Made by a program: the position numbers and the translations under genes | Shown here: positions 520 through 45,700 of the stretch, piece by piece | How positions within the stretch are numbered: position 1 is the first letter of the stretch | How the letters are laid out: each line of letters begins with the position of its first letter | The notes under the pieces: generated by a model | The model's database searches: none | What the model saw: the letters and a program-made list of their open reading frames with translations, nothing else | Told to the model about the DNA's origin: nothing | NCBI GenBank assembly: GCA_965240325.2 | Contig: OZ251233.1 | Location: 372,001-436,000 of the forward strand | Source of the DNA: Rebecca billardiae RCC1528 | Lineage: Eukaryota; Protista; Haptophyta | Length of the DNA: 64,000 nucleotides | Reading direction: 5' to 3'

Positions 520-2241
520 ATGGCCGCCGCGCTCGTCAGCGTCATCGTCGTGTTGCATGCTGGCGAGCCGGCGTCGCGCGCGTCCCAGCTGGCGCTCGGT
601 CGCTGCGACGCCCGACTCGCAGCCCAGCCCATCCTCGCGCGCCCAGCCCGGCGCCGCCGCCTCCTCGCGATGCGCGGCGGGGGAGACGGCGAACCAGCTG
701 CCGACGCGCGCGGCGGCGCGAGGCGGGAGCCGCAGCCCGCCGCCGAGCCGGTCTCCCAGGCCGACGAGGCCATACTCGTGCTCAGGTGCATGCGGATGTG
801 GCAGCCCAGCCTGGCCTTCACCGCGCTGTGCTGGGCGCTCTACCTCGCGCCCGGCTGGGCGCGCGCGCGGCTGCCACTTTTCGCTCAGGCGCGCGGGTTT
901 GGCGCGGCGCGCGCGCTCGGCGCGTGCGCGCCGCGCGCGCAGCAAGGAGAGCCGGCGCTCGTGCCGTCGTCCTTGCACGCCGCCTTTCGCGCCGGTCGGC
1001 TCGCCGAGCGCGCGCGTGCCGCGACGCCGGCACAGCGGGCTGACTTCACCATGCAGCTGCGCGCTCTCTGCCCCAGCGCGCACCCGCTCGCGCGGGGCAG
1101 GGCGAAAGCCGAGGGCGGCGCGCTCTGCATCCGGGCGGAGTCGCAGGACCTGGGCGGCGGTGCCGCCGAGACGGGCGCGCCGTTTGCGGATTTCGACGCG
1201 CTCGAGGAGCGGCTGGCCGCGCTCGACGCGCGCGGCGCGGCGCTGGCGCGCGTGCGCGGCGCGTGCACGGCCGAGCGCGCGCGCGTGTTTGTGGGCGCGC
1301 TGGGCGGCAGCGTGGGGCTGGTGCTGCTGCTGCGCGCCGCGCGCGCGCACGCGCCGCCGGGGCTGCGCGCGCTCGGTCGGCGGGCCGCGGGCTGGATCGC
1401 GCCCGCCGCCTCCGCGCTCCATCGCGTCGGCGTGCTCGAGCTCAGCCTGTGGCTGCTCAGCGCCGCCCTGCTCGCAGATGCCCTGCTGTTTGCGCCGACC
1501 GGCCGGGCGGCCGCGGCGCTCGTGCTGCTCGGCGCGGGGCTGGCGCTTGGCCCCGCGCGCGAGCTGTCGCGCGCGCTGTGGGAGCCGCTGCCGAGCTCGG
1601 GCGGCACGGGCGGCGGCGGCGGCGGCGCGGCGCTGGGCATGCGCCGCGCCGACGCGCTCGGCCTCGCGTGGCGCGCGCTCTCCCTCGCGCCCCTCGCGCT
1701 CGCGCTGCGCTCCGCGCCGCTCGCGCTCGCCGCGCTCGGCTGCGCGTACGCGGCGCTCGGCGTGTGTCCGGTGGCGTCCGCGCTCGTGCGCCGCCTGGGC
1801 GCGGGCGGGGCGGAGGAGGCGGCGGCACGTGCGGCGGTGGCGTCGCTTGGCTTCATCGCCGCCGAGCTGGGCGTGCGCGCGGCGTGCGCGCGCCAGCGCA
1901 CGCCCGCGCGGCGCGGCGTGCGCGCGGCGCGCCTCTTTGCCACGCCCAGCTCGGCCCTGGGCGCCGGCGGGCTGCACGCGGCGACCATCTTCCTCAGCTC
2001 GGCGTGGCGACGGGCCGGCGTGCGCGCGTACGCGCGTGCAAACGCGCTGGCCGTGCTCGCGCTCGGCGGCACGTTCGCCGCCGGCCAGCTCGGTGGCTGG
2101 GCAGACCTCGCGCGCGGCGCGGCCGCGTGCGCCGCGCTCTGGGCCGCGCTCAAGGGCGCAGAGCTGCTCGGCGCGCTCGGCGTGCGCACCGCGGCCGCGT
2201 GCGTCGGGCTGGCGAGCGCGGCGCTGCTGCTGCATGGATGA
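520..2241 (+). CDS. Hypothetical multi-pass membrane protein with signal-like N-terminus
   Basis: 573-aa ORF with hydrophobic start (MAAALVSVIVVL) and many Leu/Ala/Trp-rich TM-like segments. The C-terminus may extend to 2305 through a frameshift (see findings). Confidence 0.65.
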   Translation: MAAALVSVIVVLHAGEPASRASQLALGRCDARLAAQPILARPARRRRLLAMRGGGDGEPAADARGGARREPQPAAEPVSQADEAILVLRCMRMWQPSLAFTALCWALYLAPGWARARLPLFAQARGFGAARALGACAPRAQQGEPALVPSSLHAAFRAGRLAERARAATPAQRADFTMQLRALCPSAHPLARGRAKAEGGALCIRAESQDLGGGAAETGAPFADFDALEERLAALDARGAALARVRGACTAERARVFVGALGGSVGLVLLLRAARAHAPPGLRALGRRAAGWIAPAASALHRVGVLELSLWLLSAALLADALLFAPTGRAAAALVLLGAGLALGPARELSRALWEPLPSSGGTGGGGGGAALGMRRADALGLAWRALSLAPLALALRSAPLALAALGCAYAALGVCPVASALVRRLGAGGAEEAAARAAVASLGFIAAELGVRAACARQRTPARRGVRAARLFATPSSALGAGGLHAATIFLSSAWRRAGVRAYARANALAVLALGGTFAAGQLGGWADLARGAAACAALWAALKGAELLGALGVRTAAACVGLASAALLLHG

Positions 2242-2503
2242 GCTTGCCGAGAAGCTTCAGCGGCTGCGAGGTGGCATCGACAAGCTGCTGACTGAAGACA
2301 GATAGTCAGTAGAGCATCATCGTCGCAGCGTGACTCTGCGTTGTCGTCACAGCGTCACGGCGGATGCATAATACTACGTCGCGTACGCTGCGAAATGCGC
2401 GCCGCGAAATGGCCGGCGGCAAAATAAACCCAATAAAGTATGCGAAACCAAATGACGATTGACCGTTGGCTTCGGAGGGGACTCCCGGTCCCGCCTCCGC
2501 ACG

Positions 2504-3091
2504 ATGGCTGACGCTCCGGGCGGCTCGCCTTTCGGCGCGCTGCGGCCGCGGCTACCGCCACCGCTCGTGCTGCGCCCGTTCGCTGAGGCTGACGTGCCCC
2601 GCGCCTACGAGCTCGAGGTCGCCGCCTTTCCGCCCGCTGAGGTGGCACCTCTCGAGCGGTTGGCGTACCGCGCCAAGTTTGCGCCTGCGTACTTCCATGG
2701 CCTCTATGACGGCGACGAGCTCATCGGCCTCGTTGTGGGCACGTGCGTCGTCGGCGTTGACGTGAAGCTGGATGATGGTGCTATGGCAAAGCATGACGAG
2801 TCTGGCGATGGTCCGCTCACGCTGTGCGTGCACAGCGTGATTGTTGAAGAGTCTCGTAGGCGGCGGGGCGTTGGGCGCGCCATGATGTGCGAGTATGTCG
2901 AGCGCATCGCGCAAGCGCCCGGACCGACGCAGCGCGTCGCGCGCGTACTACTCATTGCAAAGGCCGACAAGATCAGCTTCTACAGGTCTTGCGGCTTCAC
3001 GCTTCTCGGCGCCTCAGATATCGTGCATGGGACTGACAAGTGGTTCGAGATGGAGGTGCACACCATGGCCGTACGAGCTGCGCAAGGCTGA
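2504..3091 (+). CDS. GNAT N-acetyltransferase (Paa1/arylalkylamine NAT-like)
   Basis: LEVAAFPPAE, LCVHSVIV...RRRRGVGRAMM (acetyl-CoA motif A), LLIAK...FYRSCGF...HG..KWFEM. Intronless; ATG at 2504. Confidence 0.9.
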   Translation: MADAPGGSPFGALRPRLPPPLVLRPFAEADVPRAYELEVAAFPPAEVAPLERLAYRAKFAPAYFHGLYDGDELIGLVVGTCVVGVDVKLDDGAMAKHDESGDGPLTLCVHSVIVEESRRRRGVGRAMMCEYVERIAQAPGPTQRVARVLLIAKADKISFYRSCGFTLLGASDIVHGTDKWFEMEVHTMAVRAAQG

Positions 3092-6916: not shown

Positions 6917-9900
6917 ATGGAGAACGCGTCGCCCAACGCGCGCGTGCCTGCCTCGTCGGCCAAGCCGCCGCCGTCGATCGCGGCGAGCGTTGCAGGCGGC
7001 GCGTCCGTGCCGACGCCCCAGCGGGGCTACTCGCCCGGTGGCACCGCCTTCACGGCTTACGAGGGCTACGCCGGGGCCGGCGCGGGAGCGCCGCCGGCGC
7101 CGCCGACGCGGCTCGCCACTCCGCGCGCCGTGCTCTCGCCCGCGTTCGCGAGTGCGACGCCCGCGCGCGGTGGCGGCGCGCGCGAGGCAGACGCACCGAC
7201 GCTGCGTGACCACCTGCTCGGCTCGGTGCAGCCGCTGCTCGACACGGTCCACCGGCTGCACGCCGCGGGCGTCGAGGAGCTCGGCATCTCGCTGCCACGG
7301 ATCGTCGTGGTCGGCGAGCAGTCGTCGGGCAAGTCGTCGGTGCTCGAGGCGCTGATCGGGTACGACATCCTGCCCACGGGCTCGGGTATCGTCACGCGCC
7401 GCCCGCTCTGGCTGCGCCTCGTCTCCACCGCCTCGGAGCACGCGCCGGGCACGCGCGCGTTTGCGGCGGACTGCGACGACGACGCGCTGAGCGTGGACAG
7501 CGAGCGGAGTGGCGACGAGGCGGAGGCGGGCGAGGAGGAGGGCGCGCCGCGGCCGCCGCGCCGCGGAGCCGCGACCTCGCGCCCCTCCACCGCCGGCCCG
7601 TCGCGCTCCTCCTCCTCGCTCGCCTCCTCCGCCGCCGGCCAGCCTGAGCCGGAGCCGCGCGCTCGGATTGGGGAGAGCGCCGGCGCGATGCAGCCGGTGC
7701 CCTCGCTCGCGGCGCTCAAGTCGGGTGCGCGCGGCGCGGCGCGAGCCGCGGCTGCTGCGCGCCGCCCGGACCTCCGGGCCCTCCGCTCCGCCTCGCGGCC
7801 TCTCTCTTGCGCGTGCGCGGCTCGTGTCCGCTCGCGCGCGCGCCTGCCTCGGGGTTGGATGCCGATGCCGCGATGGCGCTCGGGCTGATTGTGTGCTCCG
7901 GCGCGCTGTGCGCCGCGCGCGCGCGCGCGCGCAGCCATCGAGCAGATGACGAACCAGGTGGCGGGCGAGCGCGCCGGCATCTGCGCCGCGCCGATCTACG
8001 TCGAGCTCGCCGGCCCCCGCTGCCCGGAGCTCACGCTGGTCGACCTGCCGGGCATCGTGAAGAACCCGCTCCCCGGCTCCGACCAGCCCGCGGACATCGA
8101 GGCGAAGACGCTCGAGCTCGTGCGGCTGTTCGGCGCGTCGCCGTCGGCGATCCTGCTGGCGGTCGTGCCGGCGATCATCGACCCGGTGGGTTGCGCGAGC
8201 GCGCGGAGAGCCGCCGGGCTGCGGCCCGCCGCGACGGGCGCACGCGCGCGCGCGCGCGCCCCTCGCGCCTCAGCCGGCGCGGCGCGCCTCTGTGCCTCTG
8301 CGCTCGCGCGCGCGCCCGCGCTCCGCAGGCGACCTCGGACGCGATTCGCGCGGCGCGCGCGCTCGACCCGACGGGCGAGCGCACGCTCGGCGTGCTGACC
8401 AAGCTCGACCTGCTCGACGGCACCGGCGGCTCCGCCGCGCCCTCGCTCCGCGCCAACCCCTTCCGGTTCGGGCTCGGCGTGGTCGGCACGCGCAACCGCA
8501 CGTGCGCGGATGTGGGCGCGGGCATGTCGGTGGCAGAGGCGCGCGCGCGCGAGCGCGCCTACTTCAAGGCGCACGGCGAGTACCGCTCGCTGCCGCGCTC
8601 GCAGCTCGGCGCTGCCGCGCTCGCCGCGCGGCTCGGGCGCACGCTCGCCGAGCGCGTCGCCGCCGCGCTCCCGGCGATCTGGCGCGCGATCGACGACCGC
8701 GCGCACGCGCTGGGCGAGACACTGGACGCACTCGCCTCGCCCACGCGCGGCCGCGGCCGCGGCGCCGCGGGCGGCGGGCGCGAGGAGGGCGCGGGCGCGC
8801 GCGCGGTGGTGACGGAGAAGGTGTGCGCGTTCAGCACGCACTTCACCGACGCGCTCCTTGGCCGCGCCTCCGCCGCGCTCACGATGCGCGCCTCGCTCGC
8901 GGCGCACGGCGGCACCGCCGACGCTGCGACCGCCGGCGCGGGCGGCGGCTCGGCGGCGGAGGCGGAGCAGAGGTCGAGCGTGGGGCTAGCGCACGTGCTC
9001 GCGCAGTTCCGAGCGTTCGGCGAGCGCGTGAGCAACTACGCCGCGGGCGCCGCGCCCGGCGGCGCGCACGCCGCCGCGCGCCCGGCCGGCGGCGCGGCGG
9101 CCGCGGCGGTCTCGGCGGGCGGGTGCGGCTGGCGCGCGTGTGAGTTTGACGTGGGCGGCGCAATCTCGGACGAGGAGATCGCCGCGACGCTCGCCGCGTC
9201 GCACGGCGCGTCCGTGCCCGGCTTCGACTCGTTCGATGCGTTCCAGACGCTGATCACGCGCCACCACGCGTCGCTGCGCGCGCCCGCGCTCGGCGCGGTC
9301 GAGGCGATCTCCGAGCACCTGCGCGCGCAGCTGCTGCCGCACGCGCTCCGCGCGTCGGGGCTGCACCGCTACCCTCCGCTGGCGGAGGCGGTGGCCGAGG
9401 CGGCGCGCGAGGCGCTCGGCGAGGCGACCGCGGCGGCGCGCGAGGCGGTGCACTGCCTCATCGACCAGCTCGGTGCGCGGCGCGCGCGCGCCGCCGCGCC
9501 GCGCGCCCGGCGGGCAGAGCTGAGCCGAGCCTGGCTGTGCGTGCGCGCGCTCCGCCCGCGCCGCGCCGTCCGCTGCCTGCTGACTGCTGCCGCCGCCGCC
9601 CGTCCCTGCCGCTGCCGCTGCCGCTGCCTGCCGCTGCGGTTGCTGTTGCCTGTCTGACTGCCGCCACCTGTCTGCCTGCCGCCGCCGCAGGCTACACGTA
9701 CACGGCCGACGAGCGCTACGCCGCCGCGGCGCTCGCGGCCGAGCTCGAGCCGGCACACGCCGCGCCCAAGCCCCGCGCGGCGCGCGGCGCGCCCGGCCGC
9801 GCGCCGCACGAGCCGTCGGCCACGGCCGCCATGGGCGCGCGGCGCGTGCAGCAGCTCCGAGCCAAGCTGGGCGCGTACGACGCGCTCGTGCGCGCGCACG

Positions 9901-10818
9901 TGGCGGACGCCGTGCCGCGCGCGATCGGCTGGCACATGCTCAGCCGGCTGCAGGTGCGCGCCTCGCGCGAGCGCCCGCGGCCTGCCCGAGGTGCGCCGCG
10001 CGCTCGCCCCGCGGCCGTGCGCCGGGCACTGAGCGCCGCTGCGGGCTGCGCGCCGCCGCGGGCTGCGCGCACGTGCGCAGGCCTCGTTCCAGGTCTCGCT
10101 GCAGCGCGCGGTGGTCGACGGCAAGGACGAGCTCGAGCTCGACGCGCTGCTCACCGAGCATGAGCAGGTAGCCAAGCTCAAGGTGCGCGCGCCCGTGGCG
10201 ATCGCGGCTCGCCTGCGCCGCGCGCAGCCGGCGCCACGCGCGCCCACGCCCGAGATCGCGCTCTCGAATCGCAATCTCGACTCTCGATGCACGTTGACGG
10301 CGCGTGCGGTGCGACGGCGGTGCCGCGTGCGTGCGCGCGCGCCGACGATGCGGCAGGCCGCCGCATCCCGCGAGCTCGCCATCCTCAACGAGGCCTCCGA
10401 GACGCTGCGCAGGATGCGCGTGCCGCGCGCTGTGCTGAGCGCGGCCGCGCCGCCCGCGTCCGCGGCCAAGGGCGGCGGCGGCGGCGCGGCGATGACGGCC
10501 ACGTTCGCTGCGCTGCCTGCCTCTTTTCCGAGCGTGGCGCTGGGCGGGATGACGGCGAGTCCCGCCGCCGAAGGCGCGCGCGCGGCGGCAGCGCACGGCG
10601 CCGCGCCCGAGCCGGCGCAGCCGCGCGCGCGCAGCCGGCAGGAGGCACGGCGCGACGGCGGCGGCGCGGACGACGGCGGCTGGTGCGGCTCGACGCTGCT
10701 GCGCGCGACCCTCGTCGCCGCCGTCGCCGCCGCGGCGGCGTCGGCGGCGGCGACCGTCGTGCAGCTCACGGCTGTCTACGCGGCGGATGCGTCCGAGGGT
10801 GCGGCCGGCGAGTGGTGA
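6917..10818 (+). CDS. Dynamin-family GTPase, Mx/DRP4-like, 6 exons
   Basis: G1 [13 protein letters not shown]2 TRRPL, G3 LVDLPG, G4 TKLD; stalk [10 protein letters not shown]; GED-like [15 protein letters not shown]. Introns 7725-7934, 8186-8328, 9473-9690, 9954-10080, 10183-10356. Confidence 0.9.
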
Positions 10819-11819: not shown

Positions 11820-14800
11820 ATGCAGCTCATGTTGCGCGCCGACGACCGGCAGCCACTGCGCGGCTCGCGTGAGTCCGCCGCGCCGGGGTCACACCCGCGG
11901 GCGAGCAACCCGCAGGCATCACCCTTGTCGCCCCTCGCCGACCGGCTCGCGAGCGCCGTGCGCACGGCGCATGCGCTGCGGCGCGCGGCGCTCCCGTCGC
12001 CTCCCTCGCTGATGCTCATCACCGATCCGGGTCCCGATCCGGACGACGTGAAGGTGCGCGCATCGGCCGCATGCGCGAGGCAGCGCTGCGCGTGCGCCAC
12101 CAGCCCGCGGTGCGCGCTCACGATTGTCGCGCGCGACCTGCCCCGCCCGCCGCAGGCGTTGCTGATCGCGGCGACGATGCATCGGCGCCGCCGCCTCACA
12201 CTCCGCGCGGTCGTGTGCAATGGCGGGCATCAGGCGCGCGAGCGCGCGAGGCTCGCGCGCTGCATCCTCGACCACCTCGGCGAGCACGACATCCCCGTTG
12301 GCCACGGCAGCGAGGGCAAGCCGTATGCGCCTCAGCCGCACGAGGTGTGGCGCGCGAGCGCCGCGACGCGCATGCGCGAGCGTGCGCGGACAGCGTGCAA
12401 TGGCCTGTGCGCTGCGCTGCGGGGTGCGAGCTGGGCATGCACCGGCCGCGTACCGCTCGCGAGCACGGCTGTAGCACACGCCCGACCCCGTGCCTCAGCT
12501 CACCCACTCTGCGCCGCGGCGTCGCTGCGCGCCCCACCGCTCACCTTGCCGGCCGCGCGCCGCGCGCTGCCGCCCCGCACACGGCGCGCACAGTACGCGA
12601 TCGAGGGGTTCGCCGACGTGCCGGACTCGCGGCTGGCGCCGGGTGGCCCGCTGATCCTGCGCACGCTCCGCGCCGCCGCGCCGGGAAGCCTCACCGTCGT
12701 GTGCATCTCCAGCCTGCGCGATCTGGCGGACGCGATGGCGGCTGAGCCCGAGCTCGTGCTCAGCCGCGTGGCGCAGGTGGCGGTGCAGGGCGGGCTGGTG
12801 TGGGCGGAGGGCGCGGAGGGCGGCGGGCGGTGGGTGCCGGACACGAGCGTGAACAACGGTGCGCGCGGCGCGCGCCGAGAGCGCACGCGCGCGCCACTGC
12901 GCCGCGCGGCGGGCGACTCGGCCCGGCGCCCACCGCACTGAGCGGCGCCGGCCCCCCGCGCGCGCCGCGCATGCGCGCGCGCGCATGCGCGCGCGCGCGT
13001 CCGCGTCCGCGCCGCGCCTCGCCCCACCGGTGGCGGCGGTGGCGCAGAGTTTGACCCGGAGGCGGCAGCCGCCGTGTACGACTTTTGCTTTGAGCGCGGC
13101 CTCCCCATGACCGTGACGAGCCGGAACGCAGTGCCGCTCCTGCCGATGCAGGCACGCGCGAGCGCGCGCGCGCGCGCGTGCGGCCCACTCGCGGCGGCGG
13201 CGCAGCCGGCGCCGCGCGCGCACCCGCCGCGGCGCCAGCCGACGCTCGCGCGCGCCGCGTGTGCCGGGAGGCATGCGCGCGTGCCGCAGACGCGCGTCCC
13301 ACATGACACCTCGTGCACCCCGCCCCTCCCCCGCCGCTCGCCGCCCCGCCCCCCGCCCTCCGCACCGCGTGCGCGCGCGTCCTGACCTCCGGAGCAGCTC
13401 GCCAACTCGTTTGCGCAGCGCACGGCGTGCCCGGTGCTGGCGTACCTGGCGGCATCGCAGGCGCTCGGGCTGGAGGGGCTGTGGCGCAAGCTGTGCGCGG
13501 GCGGGCTGCCCGCGCGCTGCACCAAGCAGTGGTACTTTGAGACCTTCTGCGGCGTCGACGCCGACGCCTTCCGCCGCGCACAGCTCGACGCCCTCGGCGC
13601 GGACGCGCGCATCTCTGCGCACCTCAACGGGTGCGCGCGGCCGCGCGGCGGTTACAACGGCCGTTACGGGCCAAGCGGCGGTTACAACGGCCGTTACGGG
13701 CCGAGCCGCGCAAGCCGTCGCCGGGCTCGCGCCGCGCGTGAGCGCGCGCGCTCACGGCGCCGCGCGCGGGGGCGGCGTGGATGCGCGGAGGGCGGCTGCC
13801 CCGCACTCCTGCAGCGCTCCTCCTGCAGCGCTCCTCCTGCAGCGCTAGCGCTGGGTGCAACAAGGGGCTGCAAGAGCAACCAAGCACCGCGGCCCCGGCC
13901 GTGCGGTGGCAGAGCCGGGCCCGCAGCCCAAGGCCCCGCCCTTCCTCGCGCGGCCGGCCGGCCCTGACTCCGCGTGCCCTCCCCCGCCCCGCGCCCCGCC
14001 GGCCCCACGCCCCGCCCGGCCGCGTGCTCCCTGCCCGCGCGCGCGCTCGGCCGCCTTGCGCGCGCCTGCACCGCCTTGCGCGCGCATGCACCATGCAGGT
14101 TCGTCAAGCCGTACGACGTGGTGGCGCTGATGACGGTGCTGCCGGGCACGGCGGAGCAGCTCTTCACCGCGGCGGCGGCGACGAGCGTGCGCGGCACGCG
14201 GCACCTGCTGCTGCTCGAGGCCGAGCACTGCGTGCACGTGGGCGGCGTGCTCAACTTGCTGCGCGACACGTACCACCTGGTCGCGCTGCGCACGGCAGAG
14301 CTGGGCGGCGGGGCACAGCACTCAGGGAGCGAGGCGGAGGAGGCGGAGGAGGCGGCGGACGTGGCGGACGTGGAGGCTGGCGGCGGGCCCGGGCCGCGGC
14401 CGGCGCGCGCGCCAAGCGCCGCGGGCGCGGGCGCGGGCGTCGGCGCGGGCGCCGACGTGGGCGGCGGCGGGGGCGGCGGTCTCGGCGCGCGGCTTGCCCT
14501 TGGCTGGTTGCGCCCGGCTGGCCGCTGGCTGGCGCGCACGCGGCGCGGCACGGCGGATGGCGGCGGCAGCTGGCGCAGCAGCCGGGGCAGCGGCCGCGGC
14601 ATCGGTCCGAGCGCGCCCCACTCACCCTCGCGCTCCTTCGGCGGCGGCGTGCAGCGCGGCCCCCGCCGCTCCGGGCAGCGCGCGCCTCGGCTCTCCAGTC
14701 GCTCGCACTCGCCCGCCGCGCGCAGCCGGCGCGGCAGCCGCGGCCGCGGCGCGGCTGCGCTGGGCGCGGCCGCCGGGCCGACGGCGGACGGCGGCGCGTC

Positions 14801-16335
14801 GGGGCGCGGGCGCGGGCTCCGGCAGCGCTCCCGCCAGCTCTCAGAGCGCGAGTTCGGGGCGCACATCGGCGTGCGCCGGCTGAGCCCGCTGGTGCAGCGA
14901 CGCTTTGCGCACGCGCCGCGCACGCCGGCGCCGGCCGAGGCGGCCGCGCCGGCGGCGGACGCGGGGCCCGGCGGCGGCACGGGCGCTGCCGGCGGCGATG
15001 GCGGCGGCGCGGCCGACGCGCGCCGAGCCGCCGACGCCGCGCCGCGCGCGCCGGCCGAGAGCGGCGCTTCCGACGCGCGCGCGCCGACCGCCGTCGAGAT
15101 GGCGGCGCACGCGAGCGCGGCGTCGGCGCGCGTCGCGCCTGTGCTGCAGCCCATGACCGACGCCGAGCTGTGCGCGCTGCTGGAGGCGGCGCTCGCCTCC
15201 GCGCGCGCGCTCAACCAGCGCATCGCCCTCGCGGTGCTGCTCGGCTGCGCCGCGCTCTGCGCCTTTGCCCTCACGTACGCGTTTCTGTCCAGCTTCGCCG
15301 GCTGGGCGCCGCTCGGCGCCGCGCCGCGCGGGGAAGGCGGCAGCGGCCTGGCTCGGTCCGGCTTGGTGCGCGCTGCCGAGGAGCTTCTGGTGCTGCTAGC
15401 GTATGCGCTGCTGGGCGCGGTGCTGCTCGTGCTGCACCCCTCCGACGCCGAGCGCGTGCGCATCCGCGCGGCCGCGGGCGCGATCGGAGTGCTGATCGCG
15501 ACGGTCGCGGCCTTCCAGGCCGCCATGGCCGCCTCGATGCTCGCCGGCACCGCCCCGCCGGCGGTGGACGCGTACTGGGGTGCGCGCGCCTCGGCCGAGC
15601 GCCAGCTGCTCGCGTTTGCCGTGCCGTGCGCGCTGCGGCTGTGCGTGAGCGCCGCCCTCTTTGCCAGGCTGGGTGTGCACTGGCGGCGGCCGGACGCCGT
15701 GCTGCGGGCGGCGTGGCTGGCCGTGGGCTGCGTCACGCTGCTGTCCGCGTGCAGCAAGCTGGACCACGCCGTCGCCATCCTCGCCGCCGCGACGCACGCG
15801 CGCACGGCGCAGCGGCTGCCGCCGCCGCCGCACCTCCTCGTCGGCTTCAGCTGCGCGCTGGTGTGCGCGTACGGCTGCCTCGCGCTGGCCGTGCTCCACG
15901 AGCCCACGCGCGCGCGGCTGCAGGCGCGGCTGGCCGTGCTCATCGGCGCGTCCAGCGGCGCGGCGCCGCTCGCGCCCTTCGTCGGGTACGGCTCGCTCGG
16001 CGGGCCGCGCCTCCCGTCCGAGCTCGTGCGCGCGGCCGGCGCGACGTTTGAGGCCGTCGTGCTCGACGCGCGCGCGCTCGCTGCCGCCGAGGAGGAGGCG
16101 GAGGCGGAGGAGGCGTGCGGGCGCGCCGGTGGGTTGGGGGACGGGCGCGGGCTGTTCGGCCACACGCGCCTCTCCCCGCAGGCGACGGTCGCCGCCGCCG
16201 CGGCGGTGTGCGCGGCGTGCCAAGTCGATGCCGGCGCGCGCCGCGCCGCGAGCGGCGGCGCGGGCGGCGGCGCGCTCGGCCGCCCCGCCGCCCTGGTGCC
16301 GTCGTGCGTGGGGCTCTTCCTGCCGGGGTCGGCGC

Positions 16336-16366
<31 letters not shown>

Positions 16367-17561
16367 GCGCGCCGCAGCCACGGCGCGCAAGGCCAGCAGC
16401 CGCGCGAGCTCCACAGCCACCGCCGCCACCGACCTCTCCTCCTCCGCCGCCACGTCACGCCGCTGCTCGGACGCGCCCTCGCGACGCGCCTCCTCGCGGC
16501 TGCCGAGCGCGGGCCGCTCACGCCGGCGGAGCGCGGAGGCGGACGGCGGCGCCGAGGGCGGCGGAGGCGAGGGCGCCGAGGCGGAGGCGGAGCGCGGCTC
16601 GGCGGCGGCCTGCGCGGCGTGGTCGGAGGAGGAGGGGTCGCCAGCCCATCCGCGCGCGGCCGCGGACGGCGCGCACGCCGAGGCAGGGGCGGCGGCGCCG
16701 GCCTCCGCGCCGAGCGCCGAGCCGCCGACGCCGCGCGCCGACGCATTCGTCCTCCACGCGCCCGGCGGCTCGTCGCGCGCCAAGCTGCGCGCGCTGCGCG
16801 TGTGGGCGTGCGCGCACGCGCGCACGCGCGACGCGCCGCCGCGCGTGCTCATCGACCAGCTGTGCGCGCAGCCGACGCCGAGCGCGGCGCACGAGCGGCT
16901 GCAGCACGCGCTGCCGCACCTCGCGCGCTGCGAGCGGCTGCTCGTGCTCGCCGCGCCCGGGCTGATGGAGGAGCTGTGGTGCTCGAGCGTGCTCTTCCTC
17001 TGGCTCGCGCTCGGCGGCCGGCTGGACGACGTGGACGTGGTCTACGCGTGCTGCGCGGACGGCGAGGAGGACGAGGACGACGACGCGGACGCCGACGGCG
17101 GCGCAGAGGCGAGTGCCGCGCGCGCCGACGGCGGCGCGCACGCTGCGCCCGCCTCGGCCGCGCGGCCGCGCCACCGCCGCGCCGTGCAGGACGTGATCGC
17201 CGCTGTCGACTCGTTCCACGTGATGCACACAGAGCACGGCGCCGCGCACGCCAACCCCGCCAGCGTCGGCGCGACGCTGATGCACGCCGTCGAGCTGGCT
17301 GGCGTGAGCCGGTACAACCACACGGTGCGCGAGTTCCTGCCTCTCATCGCCCGCGCCGGCCAGCACGCGCTCGAGGCCTCGGCGCAGCCGCCGGCGCGCA
17401 CTGCCGGGCCGCCGCCGACGGGGCGAGGACACGGCGAGGCCGGGGCCGCTTTGGACCAGACGAGCGGTGGCAGCCCGCCCGATGGTGATGGCGGCGGCGC
17501 GTCGTCTGGGATTCAGCTCGCCGTGCCGGCTGGCCGGCACGCTGCTCACCAGTGGCAGTAG
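11820..17561 (+). CDS. Fusion protein: nucleoside-hydrolase-like domain + low-complexity linker + ~6 TM helices + TIR-like domain; 6 exons
   Basis: NH-like motifs LITDPGPDPDD, VCISSLRDLA, SVNNEFDPEAA, KPYDVVA. TM block at ~15220-15900. C-terminal ADAFVLH...AKLRALRVW...PRVLIDQLC...LARCERLLVLA...ELWCSSVLF. Introns 12054-12155, 12345-12593, 12859-13047, 13152-13397 (GC-AG), 13631-14098. Confidence 0.8.
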
Positions 17562-18003: not shown

Positions 18004-19119
18004 TCATGAGAGATGTTCCGACCACGTGAACCATCGCAGCCATTTGGACGCCGGGAAGACGTACGTGTAGCGCCTCAAGCCGAGCAGGTCGAGCACGTAG
18101 TTGACAGACAGCTGCTCCCTCCTGCTCAAGACGGTGATCTCGGTGTGCCAGGCGCACTCGAGCGCTGCGATCGCCAAGCGCGGCTCCAGCAGCGGGCAGC
18201 CGCTGAACGGGTAGGTGGGCGGCGTGCGCACCGTGACGAGCATGGCCGTGTCGATAAGCCCGGGCCAGCCGTTGTACGCCTGCTCCTCGCTGTACCGCGC
18301 GTACAGCGCGTCGATGTCCGCGAGGTCCTGCTGCAGGCCGGGCCGGCGCTGCCCCCGCACGTGCCTCTTCGTGTGGCCCACCTCGTTCCATTTGTCGTGC
18401 GGAGGCCCGCGCGAGAGGTAGTGCGCGAACGAGATGTACGGCAGCTTCGTCTGCTTGCGTATCTGCTTGAGCAGCGCGCTCACGCTCATGCCCTTCAGGT
18501 GCATCTTCCCGTCGAGCCAGAGCGTGAACTGTGCGTGCGGGAAGAGCTGCATGCTCGCCGTCTTGAGCGACACGCTCGTGCGCGCGGCCGACTGAAAGAT
18601 GGGCGGCCGTGGCAGCTCGATCACGTTCCATCTGGCAGCCGCGGCTTGGCCAGTGGGGCGCTGGGGCGATGGCGCCGCGCGCTCAGGCATGTCGGTGAAG
18701 AGCACCGCGCATTTGTACGTGTCGCTCGCTGCGGAGGTGAACACTGGCGGAGGTGCGACCGGATCCGTCCCGCCCACGATGGCGGAGAACAGGACTATAC
18801 TGCAGTTTCCAGTCTCGGCGTGCACGCGGGCGAGCCATGCCCGCGCGGCGGCGGAGCGGAAGCCACAGTGCGCGCGTGCTGGCCTCTCCGCGGCCCGATC
18901 GGTGTCGCCGTGAGGAAGGAGCGCGTTCATGCAATCGTCGCGCACGCCTGCCGGCGCGCAGTGTGCGCTGCATCGCTGCGCGAGGGCGAGCGTGCTGTTG
19001 CGTAGGGCCTCTGTGACGCACCCGTGGAACTGGCTCGTGCACGGGCTCGGAGCCCCCGTCGATGTTTCCACGATGGCGAGGAAGACGCGCACGACGAAGA
19101 GCCAGCGAGCATCAGCCAT
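18004..19119 (-). CDS. DUF616 / TOD1-MUCI70 glycosyltransferase-like protein
   Basis: Signal-anchor N-terminus; VLFSAIVGGTD, CAVLFTD, W..IEL, LK...QLFP..QFTLWLDGK, IDTAML, REQLSVNYVL. Intronless. Confidence 0.8.
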   Translation of the reverse strand: MADARWLFVVRVFLAIVETSTGAPSPCTSQFHGCVTEALRNSTLALAQRCSAHCAPAGVRDDCMNALLPHGDTDRAAERPARAHCGFRSAAARAWLARVHAETGNCSIVLFSAIVGGTDPVAPPPVFTSAASDTYKCAVLFTDMPERAAPSPQRPTGQAAAARWNVIELPRPPIFQSAARTSVSLKTASMQLFPHAQFTLWLDGKMHLKGMSVSALLKQIRKQTKLPYISFAHYLSRGPPHDKWNEVGHTKRHVRGQRRPGLQQDLADIDALYARYSEEQAYNGWPGLIDTAMLVTVRTPPTYPFSGCPLLEPRLAIAALECAWHTEITVLSRREQLSVNYVLDLLGLRRYTYVFPASKWLRWFTWSEHLS

Positions 19120-19382: not shown

Positions 19383-20992
19383 ATGGCGTCGGTGCGCGGC
19401 CTGATTGGGGCCGCGACGGGCGTGCTCATGTTTGGGACGAACTACATTGTACGTGCGCCGGCCCGCCTCGCCCGCCCTCCGCGCCGCATGGCTCTCGTTG
19501 GCGATGGGGCGCGTTGCGCGTCGTGCCTCATGCCTGTGCCCATCCATCGCGCGCGCCGCTGCAGCCGGTGCGTCGGTACGAGACTTACGACGGCGCCATG
19601 TTCCAGTGGATGATGTCAAACGGCATCCTCGGCTTCGGGCTGCTCGTCCGAGCCTTCTTCGGCGGCAGCGTGCAAAGGTACGGCCTCCTCGGCGGCGCGC
19701 TGTGGGCGGTGTCCAACTTCCTCGTCCTGCCGGTCGTCAAATTGCTTGGCCTCGGCGTGGGCTTCGCGCTGTACCACGTGGTCAACCTGATGGTCGGGTA
19801 CATGGTGGGCCGCCTCGGCCTCTTCGGCGCGCCGCGCGACGAGGCCTCGATCCCGCTGCTGCGCGACGCGAGCGTGCTGATGCTCGCGCTGTCGTTTGTC
19901 TTCATGCTGCGGGTCGAGCCTCACATGAGCGACGGCGCCGCCGACGCCGGCGAGGACGCGCACTCGCAGATGTTCTCGGCGGAATCCGAGCCCGCGTCGT
20001 CCGTCGACCTGCGCGACATGCTGGGGCACCTCGACACCGTGAGCCCCGAGAGACAACAACAACACCGGGGCGCCGCCGGCCGCGACCCGTATCGCGCGGA
20101 GCTGCTGGACGAGCAGCAGCGCGCGCGTGCACGGCAGGCGGACACCGAGGCGTGCGCGAGCTCGGAGGGCACGGTGGGCTCGCGCAGAGGGACGCAGAGC
20201 ACGCCCGCCCTCTCCACCGTGTCCAACGCGGCCGTCGGCATCGCCGGCTCCGCCTCCGCCGCGCTGCTCTCGATCGGCCAGGGCGTCGCCGTCGGCATCA
20301 ACGCGGACGTGCGCCGCCGCCCCGTCTACTACCTCAACATGCAGCGGCACGTGCGGACGACGGGGGTGCTGGTGAGCTCGCCCATCTTGAGCCAGGGCGT
20401 GGGCAGGTCGCGGACGGCGCCAGGGCTCTCGGTCGGTGCCGCCGAGGCCGCGCCCGAGGCCGCGCCCTCGCTGCACGCCAGCGCGTGCCGCACGATTGCG
20501 ACGGTCGTCGCCGGCGTGGGCGCGCGCGGCCTCGGCGTGATGCTCGCCGTGCTCGCCGGCGCGACGACGGGGCTGAACGCGGTGCCGTTCGACATCTGGA
20601 ACGCGACGGTGCGCCCGCCGGGCGTCTCGACGCTCACCTTCGTCTTCTCCTCGACGGTTGGCGTGTACACCGCCTCGACCGTCATGTACCTCCTGTACGG
20701 CGCGGCCGCGGCGATGCGCCACCCTGCGCTCACGATGAAGCACTCGCCCGTGCGGCCGGCGTACCTCTCGGGCTTCATGTGGGCGGTCGGCTCCGCGGGG
20801 CAGATGGTGGCGATCGAGGAGCTGGGGATGGCCGAGGCATACGTCATCTGCGCCATCGGGCCGGTGATGGTCTCCGCGCTCGTCTCTGCGCTCGTGTTCG
20901 GCGAGATCCAGGGCCGCGCCAACGTGATTGCCTTCTGCGCCGCGCTCGGCATGCAGTTCACGGGCGTGGCCATGCTCGCCCTCGGCTCATGA
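19383..20992 (+). CDS. TMEM144-family (DMT superfamily) transporter, 2 exons
   Basis: Intron 19449-19564 gives FGTNYIPVRRYETYDGAMFQWMM; also GGALWAVSN...LGLGVG...GRLGLFG, PAYLSGFMW, GPVMVSAL...FGEIQG. Confidence 0.85.
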
Positions 20993-27026: not shown

Positions 27027-28214
27027 CTAAGAGTCGGACGGCGTGCTGGCCGCTTCCTCGTTGCCCGCAGAGGTTGCCGCGGGCGTGCGGCGCACAGCAA
27101 ACATGCCGCCGATGCCGCTGGCCTTGCCGCCGTCCTTGAGCCCGCCCTTCTCGCCCGTGTACCGCTCGAGGATCGCCAGCAGGTTGGGCTTGATGATCTT
27201 GTCGCTGTACTTGTCCAGCGGCAGGTCGTTGAACTCGTGGCCGAACGGCTGCTCGATCTCGATCGAGATTGTCTCGATGCCGATCAGCAGGTACGCGATC
27301 AGCACGCAGACGAGCACGCCGCCCCAGCCGACGAAGCCCGGCGTGACGAAGGGCAGCACGAGCAGCCAGAGCGAGAGCAGCGTGCGCAGCTGCACCACGT
27401 ACGCGAACGGCATCTTCGTCGTGAGGATGCGCTCGCACCGGCCGAGCGTCTCCTCGAGCGTCGAGAGGTTGCGGTCGAGCGACATCGCCGTGAACTCGCC
27501 GATGCACCCCGCACGCAGCGCGGCGGCGAGCTCGAGCGCGATGAGCTCGAGGATGAAGACGACCATGTGCTGCGCCTCGATGATGGCCTTGCGCTCCTCG
27601 GGCGTGAGCACGTCCGCCAGCTCCACTAGCTCCTTCTCTCCGCGCAGGTGGCGCTTGAGCACGACCGGGAACGCGATCACTAGCTTCACAAACCGCTGCG
27701 CGCGCTCGCGCTCGCGGATGTACGAGGTGGCCTGGCGGGCGAGGTCGCGCGAGGTGAAGGTGACCATGCCCCAGATGATCCGCCCCTCCCACCACCGCTG
27801 GTACGAGAGGTTGGTGCGGAAGACGAGAAGGAAGAAGAGCGCGGTGCCGATCACGCCGATCACCCACGGGTTGAGCGCAAACACAAACTCGGCCTCGGTC
27901 TCGGCGTCGAGCGTGGTGATGAGCACGCCGTCGAGCCGGCGCACACACATGGCGAGCGCATGCACGCCGATCACCCACAGCACGTACAGCAGGAACGTCA
28001 GCCACGGCATCCGCGGCCGCCCATCGACCGACGTGAAGGACTCGTGCCAGTAGCCGTATTTTGCGCGGTTCATCAGCTCAACGCCTTCGCCGCCCTTGTA
28101 CACGAGGCCTTTGGCCTGCGCCGCCTCCTTGGACATGTCCACACTTGTCTGCATCTGCCGCAGCATGCTGGGCCGCCGGATCTCCGCGGACGGCGTCGTC
28201 TTGGTGTTGCTCAT
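27027..28214 (-). CDS. Bestrophin-like (UPF0187/VCCN/BST type) anion channel
   Basis: FLLVFRTNLSYQRWWEGRIIWG, CERILTTKMPFAY, GIETISIEIEQPFG...NDLPLD. Intronless; likely ATG at 28214. Confidence 0.93.
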   Translation of the reverse strand: MSNTKTTPSAEIRRPSMLRQMQTSVDMSKEAAQAKGLVYKGGEGVELMNRAKYGYWHESFTSVDGRPRMPWLTFLLYVLWVIGVHALAMCVRRLDGVLITTLDAETEAEFVFALNPWVIGVIGTALFFLLVFRTNLSYQRWWEGRIIWGMVTFTSRDLARQATSYIRERERAQRFVKLVIAFPVVLKRHLRGEKELVELADVLTPEERKAIIEAQHMVVFILELIALELAAALRAGCIGEFTAMSLDRNLSTLEETLGRCERILTTKMPFAYVVQLRTLLSLWLLVLPFVTPGFVGWGGVLVCVLIAYLLIGIETISIEIEQPFGHEFNDLPLDKYSDKIIKPNLLAILERYTGEKGGLKDGGKASGIGGMFAVRRTPAATSAGNEEAASTPSDS

Positions 28215-28614
28215 CGCGAGGACGTACCAGGGAGATGCGATCGACTGGGAGTCCTGGCGGTGGGGCCGGCCGGCCAGCGGAGAATCTGCGCTCACGATCA
28301 TCAGGCTCTTGATCAGGCAGTTAATTAAGGGCGGACGATACCAGAGAGGCAGAGATTCCTGGTTCGTCCGCCGCTGAGAACTTTCGTCGAAGTTCTGATC
28401 CCGGAGCGCTCACGGCGGGAAGCACGCAGGCGCGGTCGAGGACGCCACGGGCTCGGCCCACCAGCCGCCTCCCACCAGCCGCGGACACGCACCGCGCCTC
28501 CTCATCGCACGCTGCGATCGCGTCGTCACAGCCAAGAGCCGATCAGCAAGCAGAGTCGTCGAGGCACGGACGGCGTCGGACGAGCCTCCGCGGGGAGCCC
28601 AGCAGGCGCTGGCG

Positions 28615-42700: not shown

Positions 42701-45700
42701 GCCCGATCAGACGCGGAGCGCGCGGCGGCGCGCGGCGCGGCGGAGGCGGCGGTGAGCGCGCTCGGGCCGTTCCTCCTCCCGCCGGCCGACGCGGACCACG
42801 CGCCCGCCGGCGGCGGCGGCCGCGCCGCGCTGTTCCGGCAGCGCCGCGTGGCCGGCGCCGCGGCGGACGCGTCGGGCGCGGGCGGCACGCTCCACTACGC
42901 GCCGGCGCTGAGCGCGGCCGAGCGGCTGCGCGCGGAGGCGGCGCACGCGTTCGTGCTGGCGGAGGCGGCGCGCGCGGCGCAGCGCGTGGTCGCCGCCACC
43001 TCCGCCGCGCGCGCCGCGCACGAGGACGCGGCGCACGAGGCGCAGCTCTCCGCGCTCGCGCTGTCGCAGCTCTCGCCCGCGCGCCAGATCCAGCCGCCGC
43101 GCGCGCGCGCTGCACACGAGGCGTCGCCGTCTGAGACGGAGACGGGCGTGCTCGGTGCGCGCGCGGTGGAGGGCGGGGGTGCGAGGGGCGGCGCCGAGCT
43201 GCCCGCGCTCGGGGGCCGCGCGAAGCCCGCGCCCAGGCCTGAGCACGCCGCGCAGCCCACGCACAGCACCCACGGCCTCCCCCTCACCACCACGCTCTCG
43301 GGGCCGGCGGCGCGCGCCAAGCACGGCGGCGCTAAGCGCGGCGGCGCGCCGAGTGAGACGCGTGGCGGTGGCGGCGGCGCACCCGAGGGCGTCGCTGGCA
43401 CGCCGCCGCCCGCCGTGCCCGCCAGCATCCGCGCGCCCGACGACGAGCCGCCGGCCGCGCGGCGCGCGGCGGGCGCGGCTCTCGGCCTGCGCGCGCACGA
43501 CTCGCCGGCAGCGGGCGGCACCTCACAGGCGGATGACGACGAGGAGGAGGAGGAGGTGGGCATTGATGGGCGGTTTGCAAACGCGCGCTCGCCGGCCGTC
43601 CTGCGCGGGCGGCTGCACGGCGCCGAGTCGGCGGAGGCCGACCTGGACGGCGAGATGGCGTCTCCCGAGCCCGCGTCGCAGCGGGAGGGGGTCGTCGCCT
43701 TCGCGCCGTCCGCCACCGTGCCGACGGGCGCGGCTGGCGCTGAGCGCTCGCCGCCGCGCGTGCCAGCGCCGGCCGCCGACGCCGACGCGGCCGCCGAGCC
43801 CGACGCCGCCGACGACGACATGGGCTCGGACGCGGGGCCCGCGCTCGAGCCGCACGCGCGCGATGCGGACGACTACGACCCGCTCGCGAGCGCGCAGCAC
43901 GGCGCGGGCGCGGCGCCAGCGGCTGCCGCAGCGGACGGCGCGGGCGAGGCGAGCGCGCGCGTGCACGCGCACGCGCCCAGCGGCGCGCCCGGCGCCGCAG
44001 CACTCGGCGCGCCCCACGACGCGGAGGACGAGGAGGACGAGCTCGCGCCGTTCGCCGCGATCGAGCAGGGCACGCCCACCGTCGGCCGTGACGCGCGCGG
44101 CGAGTTCGTCGGCACGCAGTCGATGCGGTGGAAGCGGCCGCCCGCCGAAGCCGAGGACTCGGCCGGCGGCGAGGCCTCGCCGTTCGGCTTCGCCAGCGAC
44201 ATCTTCGACTCGCCCACCAAGCTCGGCCGCTCGCGCTCGTCCAACTCGGCGTCGGTGCGCGGCTCGGCGGACTCGCCGCTGCCGCCCGCCATGCGGCTGC
44301 CGCCGCCGCCGGACGCGGCGTCCTTCTTCGACGAGGACGACGAGCGCGCGACCGCCGAGCGGCGCGCGGCGGACGCGGCGGCGGATGCGCACGCGTTCGA
44401 GCTCGGCCTGCTCTCCGACCTCGCCTTCGCGCAGATGCAGCCGCCGCAGCCGGCGGACGCGCACGGCGGCGCCGAGCTGCTCGATGAGCACGGCCAGCCG
44501 CTCGTGCCGGCCGAGGACGGCATGGGCGGGCTGAGCGAGGACGAGCTGCGCGCCGCGCTCTACTACCTGGGCGGGGCGGCCGCGTACATCCAGGCGCACG
44601 CGCGCGGGATGGTCGACCGGCGGCGCGTGGCGGCGCACGTGGCGGCGGCGCGCCGAGGGCCGCGGCGCGAGGATGCGCCAAGCCCTGCCGCGCCCGCGCC
44701 CGACGCCAAGCCCGACACCGCGGCAGGTGTGCCCGCTGCGGACGTCGGTGCCGCCGCACACGCAGAGGGTGCGCCTGCCGCCGCGCCCGCGGACGCACTC
44801 GCGGCGGGCGCTGCCGACGAGGGAGCGCACACCGCCGCCGCACCGGCTGTCGGAGCCGGAGCGAGCAAGGGCGGCTCGGACGACGCGCCGTGGCGCGCGG
44901 ATGGGGCGGCCGCCGCGCCCGCGGATGCGGAGCTGGCCGGTATGGCGGACGACTTGCAGCAGCAGGCGGCTCGCATCCAAGCAGCAGCGCGCGGGCGGCA
45001 GACGCGGCGAGCACTTGCCGGCGACGCCGACGACGCGGCCGCCGCGCCCGCGGATGCGGAGCTGGCCGGTATGGCGGACGACTTGCAGCAGCAGGCGGCT
45101 CGCATCCAAGCAGCAGCGCGCGGGCGGCAGACGCGGCGAGCACTCGCCGGCGGTGCTGACGACGCGGCTGACGCGGCCGCCGCGCCCGCGGATGCGGAGC
45201 TGGCCGGTATGGCGGACGACTTGCAGCAGCAGGCGGCTCGCATCCAAGCAGCAGCGCGCGGCCGGCAGACGCGGCGAGCACTCGCCGACGGTTCTGACGA
45301 CGCGGCAGACGCGGCCGCCGCGCCCGCGGATGCGGAGCTGGCCGGTATGGCGGACGACTTGCAGCAGCAGGCGGCTCGCATCCAGGCAGCAGCGCGCGGG
45401 CGGCAGACGCGGCGAGCACTCGCGGACGGTGCTGACGACGCGGCCGACGCGGCAGATGCGCCCGCGGATGCGGAGCTGGCCGGTATGGCGGACGACTTGC
45501 AGCAGCAGGCGGCTCGCATCCAAGCAGCAGCGCGCGGGCGGCAGACGCGGCGAGCACTCGCCGGCGGTGCTGACGACGCGGCTGACGCAGCCGCCGCGCC
45601 CGCGGATGCGGAGCTGGCCGGTATGGCGGACGACTTGCAGCAGCAGGCGGCTCGCATCCAAGCAGCAGCGCGCGGGCGGCAGACGCGGCGAGCACTCGCC

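Follow-up and report, generated by a model that had tools for sequence, protein, structure and literature searches.

A Pavlovales protein family in which a XopQ-like domain is joined to membrane helices and a TIR-like domain

Introduction

What is the role of a protein that starts with a nucleoside-hydrolase fold, continues into a set of membrane helices and ends in a domain resembling TIR domains? This question is raised by a gene at positions 11820-17561 on the + strand of a 64,000-nucleotide stretch of DNA from the haptophyte Rebecca billardiae RCC1528 (GenBank contig OZ251233.1, positions 372,001 to 436,000), which is called the window here. A first-pass annotation, made from the letters of this DNA, suggested that the product would be a membrane receptor coupling two N-glycosidase folds, and did not recognise the architecture as a described one. 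Full-text searches of the literature likewise returned no account of a XopQ-type domain in fusion with a TIR-like one.

The components of this architecture are known separately, namely the HopQ1/XopQ-like (HLP) clan, TIR enzymes, multi-pass TIR proteins in the membranes of another haptophyte, and a maker and breaker pair for cyclic ADP-ribose (cADPR) in animals. For two decades, no substrate was known for the enzyme XopQ/HopQ1. A preprint of June 2026 reports that bacterial XopQ cleaves the ribose-ribose O-glycosidic bond of the TIR product 2'cADPR to yield ADP-ribose in a highly specific and near diffusion-limited reaction, an activity that was shown for bacterial XopQ proteins only (10.64898/2026.06.15.732069). 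XopQ was inactive on nucleosides, cADPR, 3'cADPR and pRib-AMP (10.64898/2026.06.15.732069). Algal HLPs have already been noted as a clade of this clan, and no fusion was mentioned there (PMC6019455).

Results

Three modules in one order

An exhaustive search with the C-terminal domain as query found 338 proteins at E ≤ 1e-3. Many of the long matches also match the hydrolase exons of the window, which align to the relatives with E values of 1e-20 to 1e-31, and the relatives are collinear with window positions 11958-17417 in a single frame. The first-pass annotation had suggested a search for other proteins of the same architecture. When three module profiles were applied to 288 fetched proteins, at least 50 carried the hydrolase, membrane and TIR-like modules in the order of the window, and a further eight had the three modules in order with a divergent membrane part. 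The set includes complete MMETSP transcripts (P0152/P0271 of Pavlova gyrans, P0155, P0272 and P0032), gene models of Diacronema lutheri and Pavlovales sp. CCMP2436, and environmental contigs of 3-4 kb, each of which is filled by one intron-free open reading frame (ORF). Since complete three-module transcripts are among them, the fusion sits on one transcript in the relatives, in line with the first-pass proposal that one gene encodes the nucleoside-hydrolase fold, the six membrane helices and the TIR-like domain. The linker between the hydrolase and membrane modules measures 35-290 residues in these proteins.

All named relatives belong to the Pavlovales, in which the family numbers at least nine paralogues in D. 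lutheri and at least ten in CCMP2436. In databases they are labelled as 'hypothetical', 'IU-nucleoside hydrolase domain-containing' or 'TIR domain-containing'. The paralogues vary in which site is intact: P0077 has changed Asp residues in the hydrolase and keeps the TIR-type Glu, and the reverse is seen in P0055 and the window copy. Two further proteins, P0169 (a TIR-like part followed by a hydrolase) and P0005 (with a pair of TIR-like domains), appear to be adjacent genes merged into one, a hint that some genomes carry paralogues in tandem.

The N-terminal domain

The first-pass annotation took the N-terminal domain for a generic nucleoside hydrolase that cleaves N-ribosidic bonds. This assignment has to be replaced. 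Judged by sequence comparison, the domain belongs to the HLP clan, which has the nucleoside-hydrolase fold and whose bacterial members cut the O-glycosidic bond of 2'cADPR (10.64898/2026.06.15.732069), because the family profile matches the XopQ structures 4KL0, 4P5F and 7JLU with E values of 1.6e-37 to 3e-37 (classical hydrolases: 2e-9 or weaker) and the nearest named family in the protein database is XopQ of Xanthomonas, with 30-33% identity over 88% of the domain. The Pfam family PF01156 (IU-nucleoside hydrolase) matches weakly: the unspliced window ORF scores 28 bits and the relatives score 27-56 bits. The XopQ model of NCBIfam is the sole match on two pieces of the window, far under its cut-off.

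For a residue-by-residue comparison, the window exons were aligned separately to XopQ of X. oryzae. The segment LITDPGPDPDD aligns with LFTDPNKDPDD of XopQ, so that D116, D120, D122 and D123 of the calcium and catalytic cluster are kept. This non-canonical calcium motif (TDP..DPDD instead of D.D...DD) reads TDPGPDPDD in 15 of the 17 full-length relatives with a script-readable motif. The equivalents of the XopQ residues N280 and N281 are also kept in the window. In XopQ, ADP-ribose is contacted by Tyr279, Leu342, Leu345, Trp361 and Phe366 (PMC11185476). Four of these five residues, L342, L345, W361 and F366, are identical in the window and invariant across the family; the fifth, Tyr279, is replaced by Val in the window and in most relatives.

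The C-terminal domain

In an alignment of 59 members, the C-terminal domain has the consensus ADxYVVHSxxD ... VWLD ... LLLLAGP.L...LWC..ELY.W..GG ... FDAFHVMY ... FN..VR. It was modelled by AlphaFold2 with a predicted local distance difference test score (pLDDT) of 87 and a predicted TM-score (pTM) of 0.83. When this model was compared with solved structures by Foldseek, most of the 20 best matches were TIR domains (RUN1, MAL, IL-1RAcP, MyD88, TRAM, SIGIRR, AbTir, RPS4 and SARM1). These matches have probabilities of 0.97-0.99, but E values of 0.015-0.2 and TM-scores of at most 0.52 over about 105-110 aligned residues. Folds of nucleoside 2'-deoxyribosyltransferase and DNPH1 follow closely (E 0.065-0.15). 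In a library of viral structures, the best matches are deoxyribosyltransferase-like proteins, and an algal-virus TIR/WD40 protein is among the others. At the level of predicted fold and motifs, the domain is thus TIR-like, as a remote and distinct family.

Sequence searches of solved structures, with the single domain and with the profile, gave sub-threshold TIR matches only (E 0.05-0.7), amid designed helical proteins. The weak matches of the profile are the TIR domains of TLR and SIGIRR, aligned at the first strand and at the WC..E helix. From this alignment and from prior knowledge, we take the helix Glu of LWC..E to be the catalytic Glu of TIR enzymes. It is present in 35 of the 59 members, and the Asp of the first motif is kept in 56. 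Of 17 parsed full-length members, 12 have the Asp motif TDP..DPDD as well as the Glu. The first-pass annotation had compared the window copy with the pattern DAFxSH...WCxxE. This pattern is incomplete in the copy: the WC is present (LWCSSVLFLW), but Val stands in place of Glu, and this copy is the only member with Gly at the position of the Asp (DAFVLHAPGG). A box-1-type motif together with a Glu-bearing WC..E helix is therefore found in the typical family member and not in the window copy. With its Glu changed to Val, the latter is probably no NADase, and cleavage of nicotinamide adenine dinucleotide (NAD+) by its TIR-like domain is unlikely.

The membrane domain

Six hydrophobic helices are predicted at about 15220-15890, and the membrane domain is homologous in 60 of 150 fetched relatives. 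Its AlphaFold2 model (pLDDT 84) consists of six long helices and a conserved cytosolic segment. Comparison of this model with solved structures gave nothing at E<0.5, the best value being 0.56, and no Pfam family matches the domain. The membrane domain is thus an orphan fold with a confident model. Its top fold matches (LTC4 synthase, ESX components and G-protein-coupled receptors) were read as generic helix bundles, and assignments as a channel, a transporter or a G-protein-coupled receptor were dropped. The word 'receptor' in the first-pass annotation is not retained either, as neither solved structures nor Pfam offer a recognisable relative of this domain.

Both soluble domains should face the cytosol, because a signal peptide is absent, the N-terminal soluble domain is large and the helices number six. 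The first-pass annotation had reasoned in the same way from the missing signal peptide and the even helix count, and its topology, though inferred, is kept here. Charges of the loops agree weakly with this placement.

Gene structure

The window is very GC-rich (58-85% GC in 2-kb steps) and eukaryotic. The gene has six exons and five introns, and its product has at most 1495 residues (Table 1). As claimed in the first-pass annotation, the motifs share one frame of the + strand once five introns are removed: TDPGPDPDD is at 12018-12044, NN and EFDPEAA are joined across intron 3, PYD is at 14108-14116, DAFVLH starts at 16740, and LWC lies inside LWCSSVLFLW. In this frame, conserved peptide blocks alternate with stretches that are missing from relatives. 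Splicing restores the family consensus, drawn from an alignment of eleven relatives, at all five junctions (DPDDVKALL, PHEY, SVNN.FD, LPMQLA.SFA and LNGFVKPYD). The donor is GTG(C/T)G in four of the five introns, with the hexamer GTGCGC or GTGTGG, and GC in the remaining one; the acceptor is CAG in all five. For intron 4, the nearest GT donor, at 13178, was rejected since it would disrupt the reading frame as well as the family consensus. The exons have this genome's codon-position signature, with GC contents of 0.86-0.99 at third positions (GC3) and 0.44-0.58 at second positions (GC2), and introns are flat. From 14099 the frame stays open up to the stop codon. The product runs from the hydrolase-fold domain through a linker, six membrane helices and a second linker to a conserved 165-residue domain with a local acidic insertion, and then a tail. 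The gene is intact, has introns and belongs to a Pavlovales-type haptophyte alga; it is no broken effector gene. The DNA is not of human origin, and neither a virus nor a provirus has a part in it.

Table 1. Features of the gene, in window coordinates
Feature	Position	Strand	Remarks
Exon 1	11820..12053	+	First ATG of the frame (putative start); Arg/Ser/Ala-rich extension of ~60 residues; strand 1; Asp cluster LITDPGPDPDDVK; GC3 0.90 vs GC2 0.65
Intron 1	12054..12155	+	102 nt; GTGCGC...CAG; phase 0; flat codon-position GC; present in no relative
Exon 2, XopQ-like domain	12156..12344	+	Homology to relatives; alignment to XopQ
Intron 2	12345..12593	+	249 nt; GTGTGG...CAG; phase 0
Exon 3, XopQ-like domain	12594..12858	+	Ends in DTSVNN (ribose-binding Asn pair); 54-62% identity to relatives
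Intron 3	12859..13047	+	189 nt; GTGCGC...CAG; phase 1; in-frame stop at 12939
Exon 4 (EFDPEAAAAVYDFCFERGLPMTVTSRNAVPLLPMQ)	13048..13151	+	Homology to relatives; alignment to XopQ
Intron 4	13152..13397	+	246 nt; GC-AG, CAG/GCACGC...CAG; phase 0; boundary from family consensus LPMQLA.SFA
Exon 5	13398..13630	+	Equivalents of XopQ L342, L345, W361 and F366 (ADP-ribose contacts); 60-67% identity to relatives
Intron 5	13631..14098	+	468 nt; GTGCGC...CAG; phase 2; short tandem repeats inside; in-frame stop at 13965
Start of exon 6, end of XopQ-like domain (FVKPYD...LLRDTYHLVAL)	14099..14315	+	Homology; family alignment
Linker 1	14316..15140	+	~275 codons; Ala/Gly/Arg/Ser-rich, presumably disordered; GC3 0.92-0.93, as in exons
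Membrane domain	15141..16100	+	Six long helices and conserved segment past helix 6 (ARL...G..A.LAP..G.GS...P..L)
Linker 2	16101..16730	+	~210 codons; Ala/Gly/Ser-rich, presumably disordered
TIR-like domain	16731..17381	+	Acidic low-complexity insertion at ~17061-17180, missing from relatives
C-terminal tail, low-complexity, and stop codon (17559-17561)	17382..17561	+	

The lengths of the five introns are all multiples of three, so that the six exons fall in one genomic frame. The chance of this is about 1/243 for a gene with five introns, and it may be a coincidence or reflect what a sequence-only reader tends to notice. Introns 1 and 2 are without an in-frame stop. Residues 1-60 (11820-11999) are rich in Arg, Ser, Ala and Pro, contain no hydrophobic stretch and have no counterpart in the relatives, which start 3-20 residues upstream of the Asp motif. 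These residues may be a targeting presequence or the result of a wrong start codon.

The surroundings of the gene are ordinary. The neighbouring coding blocks encode a dynamin central region, a glycosyltransferase of the TOD1/MUCI70 type, a transporter of the TMEM144 type and a bestrophin, and are listed at 7100-10000 (+), 18010-18669 (-), 19502-20161 (+) and 27039-28388 (-). A second family member was looked for in the 64-kb window and none was found, nor was a cluster of related or defence-type genes. On the - strand at 44291-52720 lies a tandem array of about 8 kb whose repeats have a period of about 132 bp; it shows a strong AT skew along with a periodicity like that of codons. Read in one frame, it gives a unit of about 44 residues (LDASRLLLQVVRHTGQLRIRGRGGRV...ECSPRLPPARCC), with weak, repeat-driven Pfam matches; the array represents a giant repetitive gene or else a satellite.

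Discussion

A proposed module of nucleotide signalling

The reading that we favour, with a probability of roughly 40%, is that these proteins form a module of TIR-type ADP-ribose nucleotide signalling that is anchored in a membrane and faces the cytosol, and in which the XopQ-like domain would degrade the signal. It builds on the architecture, the clan membership, the retained catalytic and pocket residues, the TIR-like fold, the loss of Glu and the paralogue family, which are described above. In typical members, the Glu-bearing TIR-like domain would turn NAD+ into a cyclic signal derived from ADP-ribose upon assembly. The tethered XopQ-like domain, of the calcium-dependent glycohydrolase type, would bind this signal and cut its ribosyl bond, by which the signal would be limited in space and time or be converted to ADP-ribose. 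The window copy, since it has lost both the Glu and the invariant Asp of the TIR-like domain, would act mainly as a membrane-tethered subunit that degrades or regulates the signal. Its TIR-like domain would then serve in assembly, perhaps with paralogues that are catalytically complete.

Several observations weigh against this proposal. To our knowledge, a signal maker and a signal breaker in one chain would be an unusual design. The activities of all family members are inferred from sequence. On the predicted structure, the TIR match is remote (E ≥ 0.015) and folds of the deoxyribosyltransferase type appear nearly as good. Curated TIR models (Pfam PF01582, PF13676 and related ones, and the ThsB type of PADLOC) gave no significant match to the window domain, and TIR_2 of Pfam touches three of the 59 members at E ≥ 0.053. 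Curated TIR models also gave nothing on five further relatives, including the D. lutheri paralogues P0014 and P0264, which UniProt names 'TIR domain-containing protein'. PF01156 was the only family found when the C-terminal and membrane domains and also full-length relatives were compared with Pfam, NCBIfam and PADLOC. What stands of the first-pass TIR assignment is a remote match at the level of the predicted fold: the best solved structures are nearly all TIR domains, with weak Foldseek statistics, and no TIR model of Pfam or PADLOC is significant. In the XopQ-like domain, the change of Tyr279 to Val means that the substrate may differ from 2'cADPR. In addition, a TIR clade that has haptophyte members groups with a 3'cADPR-producing TIR of Chlamydomonas (10.64898/2026.04.20.719644), and 3'cADPR is an isomer that XopQ does not cut (10.64898/2026.06.15.732069). 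Finally, the continuity of the linkers in the window gene is argued from the frame, the codon-position GC and the relatives. A database look-up for the product of the window gene found no transcript, and the sole near-identical record comes from a genomic contig of Logan (ERR14847151, contig 577, L001). At 1895-3007, this contig is 99.7% identical to window positions 11829-12938 and is called as an unspliced ORF of 370 residues (P0255), so that the same organism or a close strain is represented in public read archives.

Alternative explanations

The main rival explanation, in our judgement unlikely, regards the protein as a sensor coupled to an effector. The XopQ-like domain would be mainly a receptor for a nucleotide of the ADP-ribose type, its binding would alter the membrane domain, by pore opening or disturbance of the membrane, and the TIR-like domain would supply or relay the signal. 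There are parallels for such a design in channels gated via an enzyme-derived ADP-ribose-binding domain and in effectors of bacterial defence in which a nucleotide sensor is combined with membrane helices. The invariance of the ADP-ribose pocket fits this explanation, as do the seemingly non-catalytic TIR-like domain of the window copy and the membrane domain, which is conserved as a unit of about 300 residues with a strongly conserved segment after helix 6, beyond the needs of a simple anchor. However, the catalytic Asp cluster and the Asn pair are equally invariant, which argues for an enzyme over a mere binder, and the membrane model resembles no channel, transporter or pore. Less likely still is that the C-terminal domain is no TIR in function but a deoxyribosyltransferase- or DNPH1-like or a structural module, so that the whole would be a membrane-tethered salvage enzyme for nucleosides or nucleotides without a part in signalling. 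The deoxyribosyltransferase and DNPH1 structures that score near TIR and dominate the viral library matches, and the silence of the curated TIR models, speak for it. On the other hand, TIR box 1 and the WC..E helix have their counterparts in the motifs (A)D.Y/FVVHS..D and LWC..ELY.W, most of the best-ranked structures are TIR domains with high probabilities, the bacterial XopQ clan is inactive on ordinary nucleosides, and large, variable paralogue families suit genes of conflict or signalling better.

It is also conceivable, with a very low probability, that the locus holds two genes, one for a soluble XopQ-like hydrolase (about 11820-14320) and another for a separate membrane-plus-TIR-like protein (about 15150-17561), which share a frame by chance in GC-rich DNA. 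Stop-free frames are common here: each of the two linkers remains open in about 22% of shuffled versions, and the opposite strand carries an ORF of 1052 residues. The open linker frame is therefore no evidence for one gene by itself, and the length of the open frame was rejected as an argument since shuffles are often open as well. There is also an ATG at 15153, just upstream of the membrane domain, and stand-alone XopQ-like transcripts of about 370 residues exist (P0180). A single gene is favoured, however, by the relatives that carry all three modules in one product, complete transcripts among them, and by their low-complexity linkers of a comparable kind. In the window itself, three conserved blocks share one frame, and the GC3 of the linkers (0.92-0.95) is like that of exons and above that of most introns.

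Relation to known systems

The window domain and the type III effectors XopQ, HopQ1 and RipB, with the rest of the HLP clan, have in common the fold, the clan, the TDP..DPDD calcium motif, the Asn pair, four of the five ADP-ribose contacts, and a Tyr-Asp that replaces the His-Asp of classical hydrolases. The window gene differs from the effectors in being a cellular algal gene with introns whose product is not a secreted effector, in its fusion to membrane helices and a TIR-like domain, and in the Val at the position of Tyr279. With the NAD+-cleaving TIR enzymes (RUN1, RPS4, SARM1, AbTir and ThsB of Thoeris), the family shares the predicted fold of the first four strands and helices, a box-1-like motif and, in 35 of the 59 members, the Glu of WC..E. 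The family departs from these enzymes in the C-terminal third of its domain, which forms an additional bundle of helices with invariant D.FH and N...R motifs, and in matching no curated TIR profile significantly; in the window copy, Glu is moreover replaced by Val and Asp by Gly.

A related case is that of Gephyrocapsa huxleyi, another haptophyte, in which multi-pass membrane TIR proteins are expressed during virus infection (PMC12489294). These proteins likewise have several membrane helices N-terminal to a cytosolic TIR domain; compared by description, they differ in that they were found with Pfam TIR models, keep the Glu and have no reported XopQ-like domain (PMC12489294). A similar logic of maker and breaker for a cyclic ADP-ribose signal is known from animals, where the TIR of dSarm makes cADPR and Raw/OLRN-1 is a cADPR hydrolase of TIR fold (PMC13455253). 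There, two different proteins make and break the signal, the breaker being of TIR fold, whereas the family described here has both folds in one chain and a candidate breaker of nucleoside-hydrolase fold.

Implications for haptophytes

Haptophytes are major primary producers of the ocean and are under heavy viral pressure. The fusion of a XopQ-type to a TIR-like domain across dozens of algal proteins is the gene-fusion type of evidence that ties two activities to one pathway, found here in a lineage that is distant from plants and from the pathogens of plants. A wider interpretation, which we put forward tentatively and regard as doubtful, is that this Pavlovales family fuses domains that make and destroy TIR signals in membrane proteins, that XopQ-type enzymes are ancient cellular regulators of ribose-linked cyclic ADP-ribose signals made by TIR domains and not only weapons of pathogens, and that haptophytes use such signals, probably against viruses. 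In this interpretation, the fusion would also give independent genomic support to the newly reported substrate of XopQ. If the link between the two activities holds, TIR-type nucleotide signalling would extend to haptophytes, the family would show how cells themselves turn such signals off, and the two domains would be a tractable pair for finding the signal molecule of these algae.

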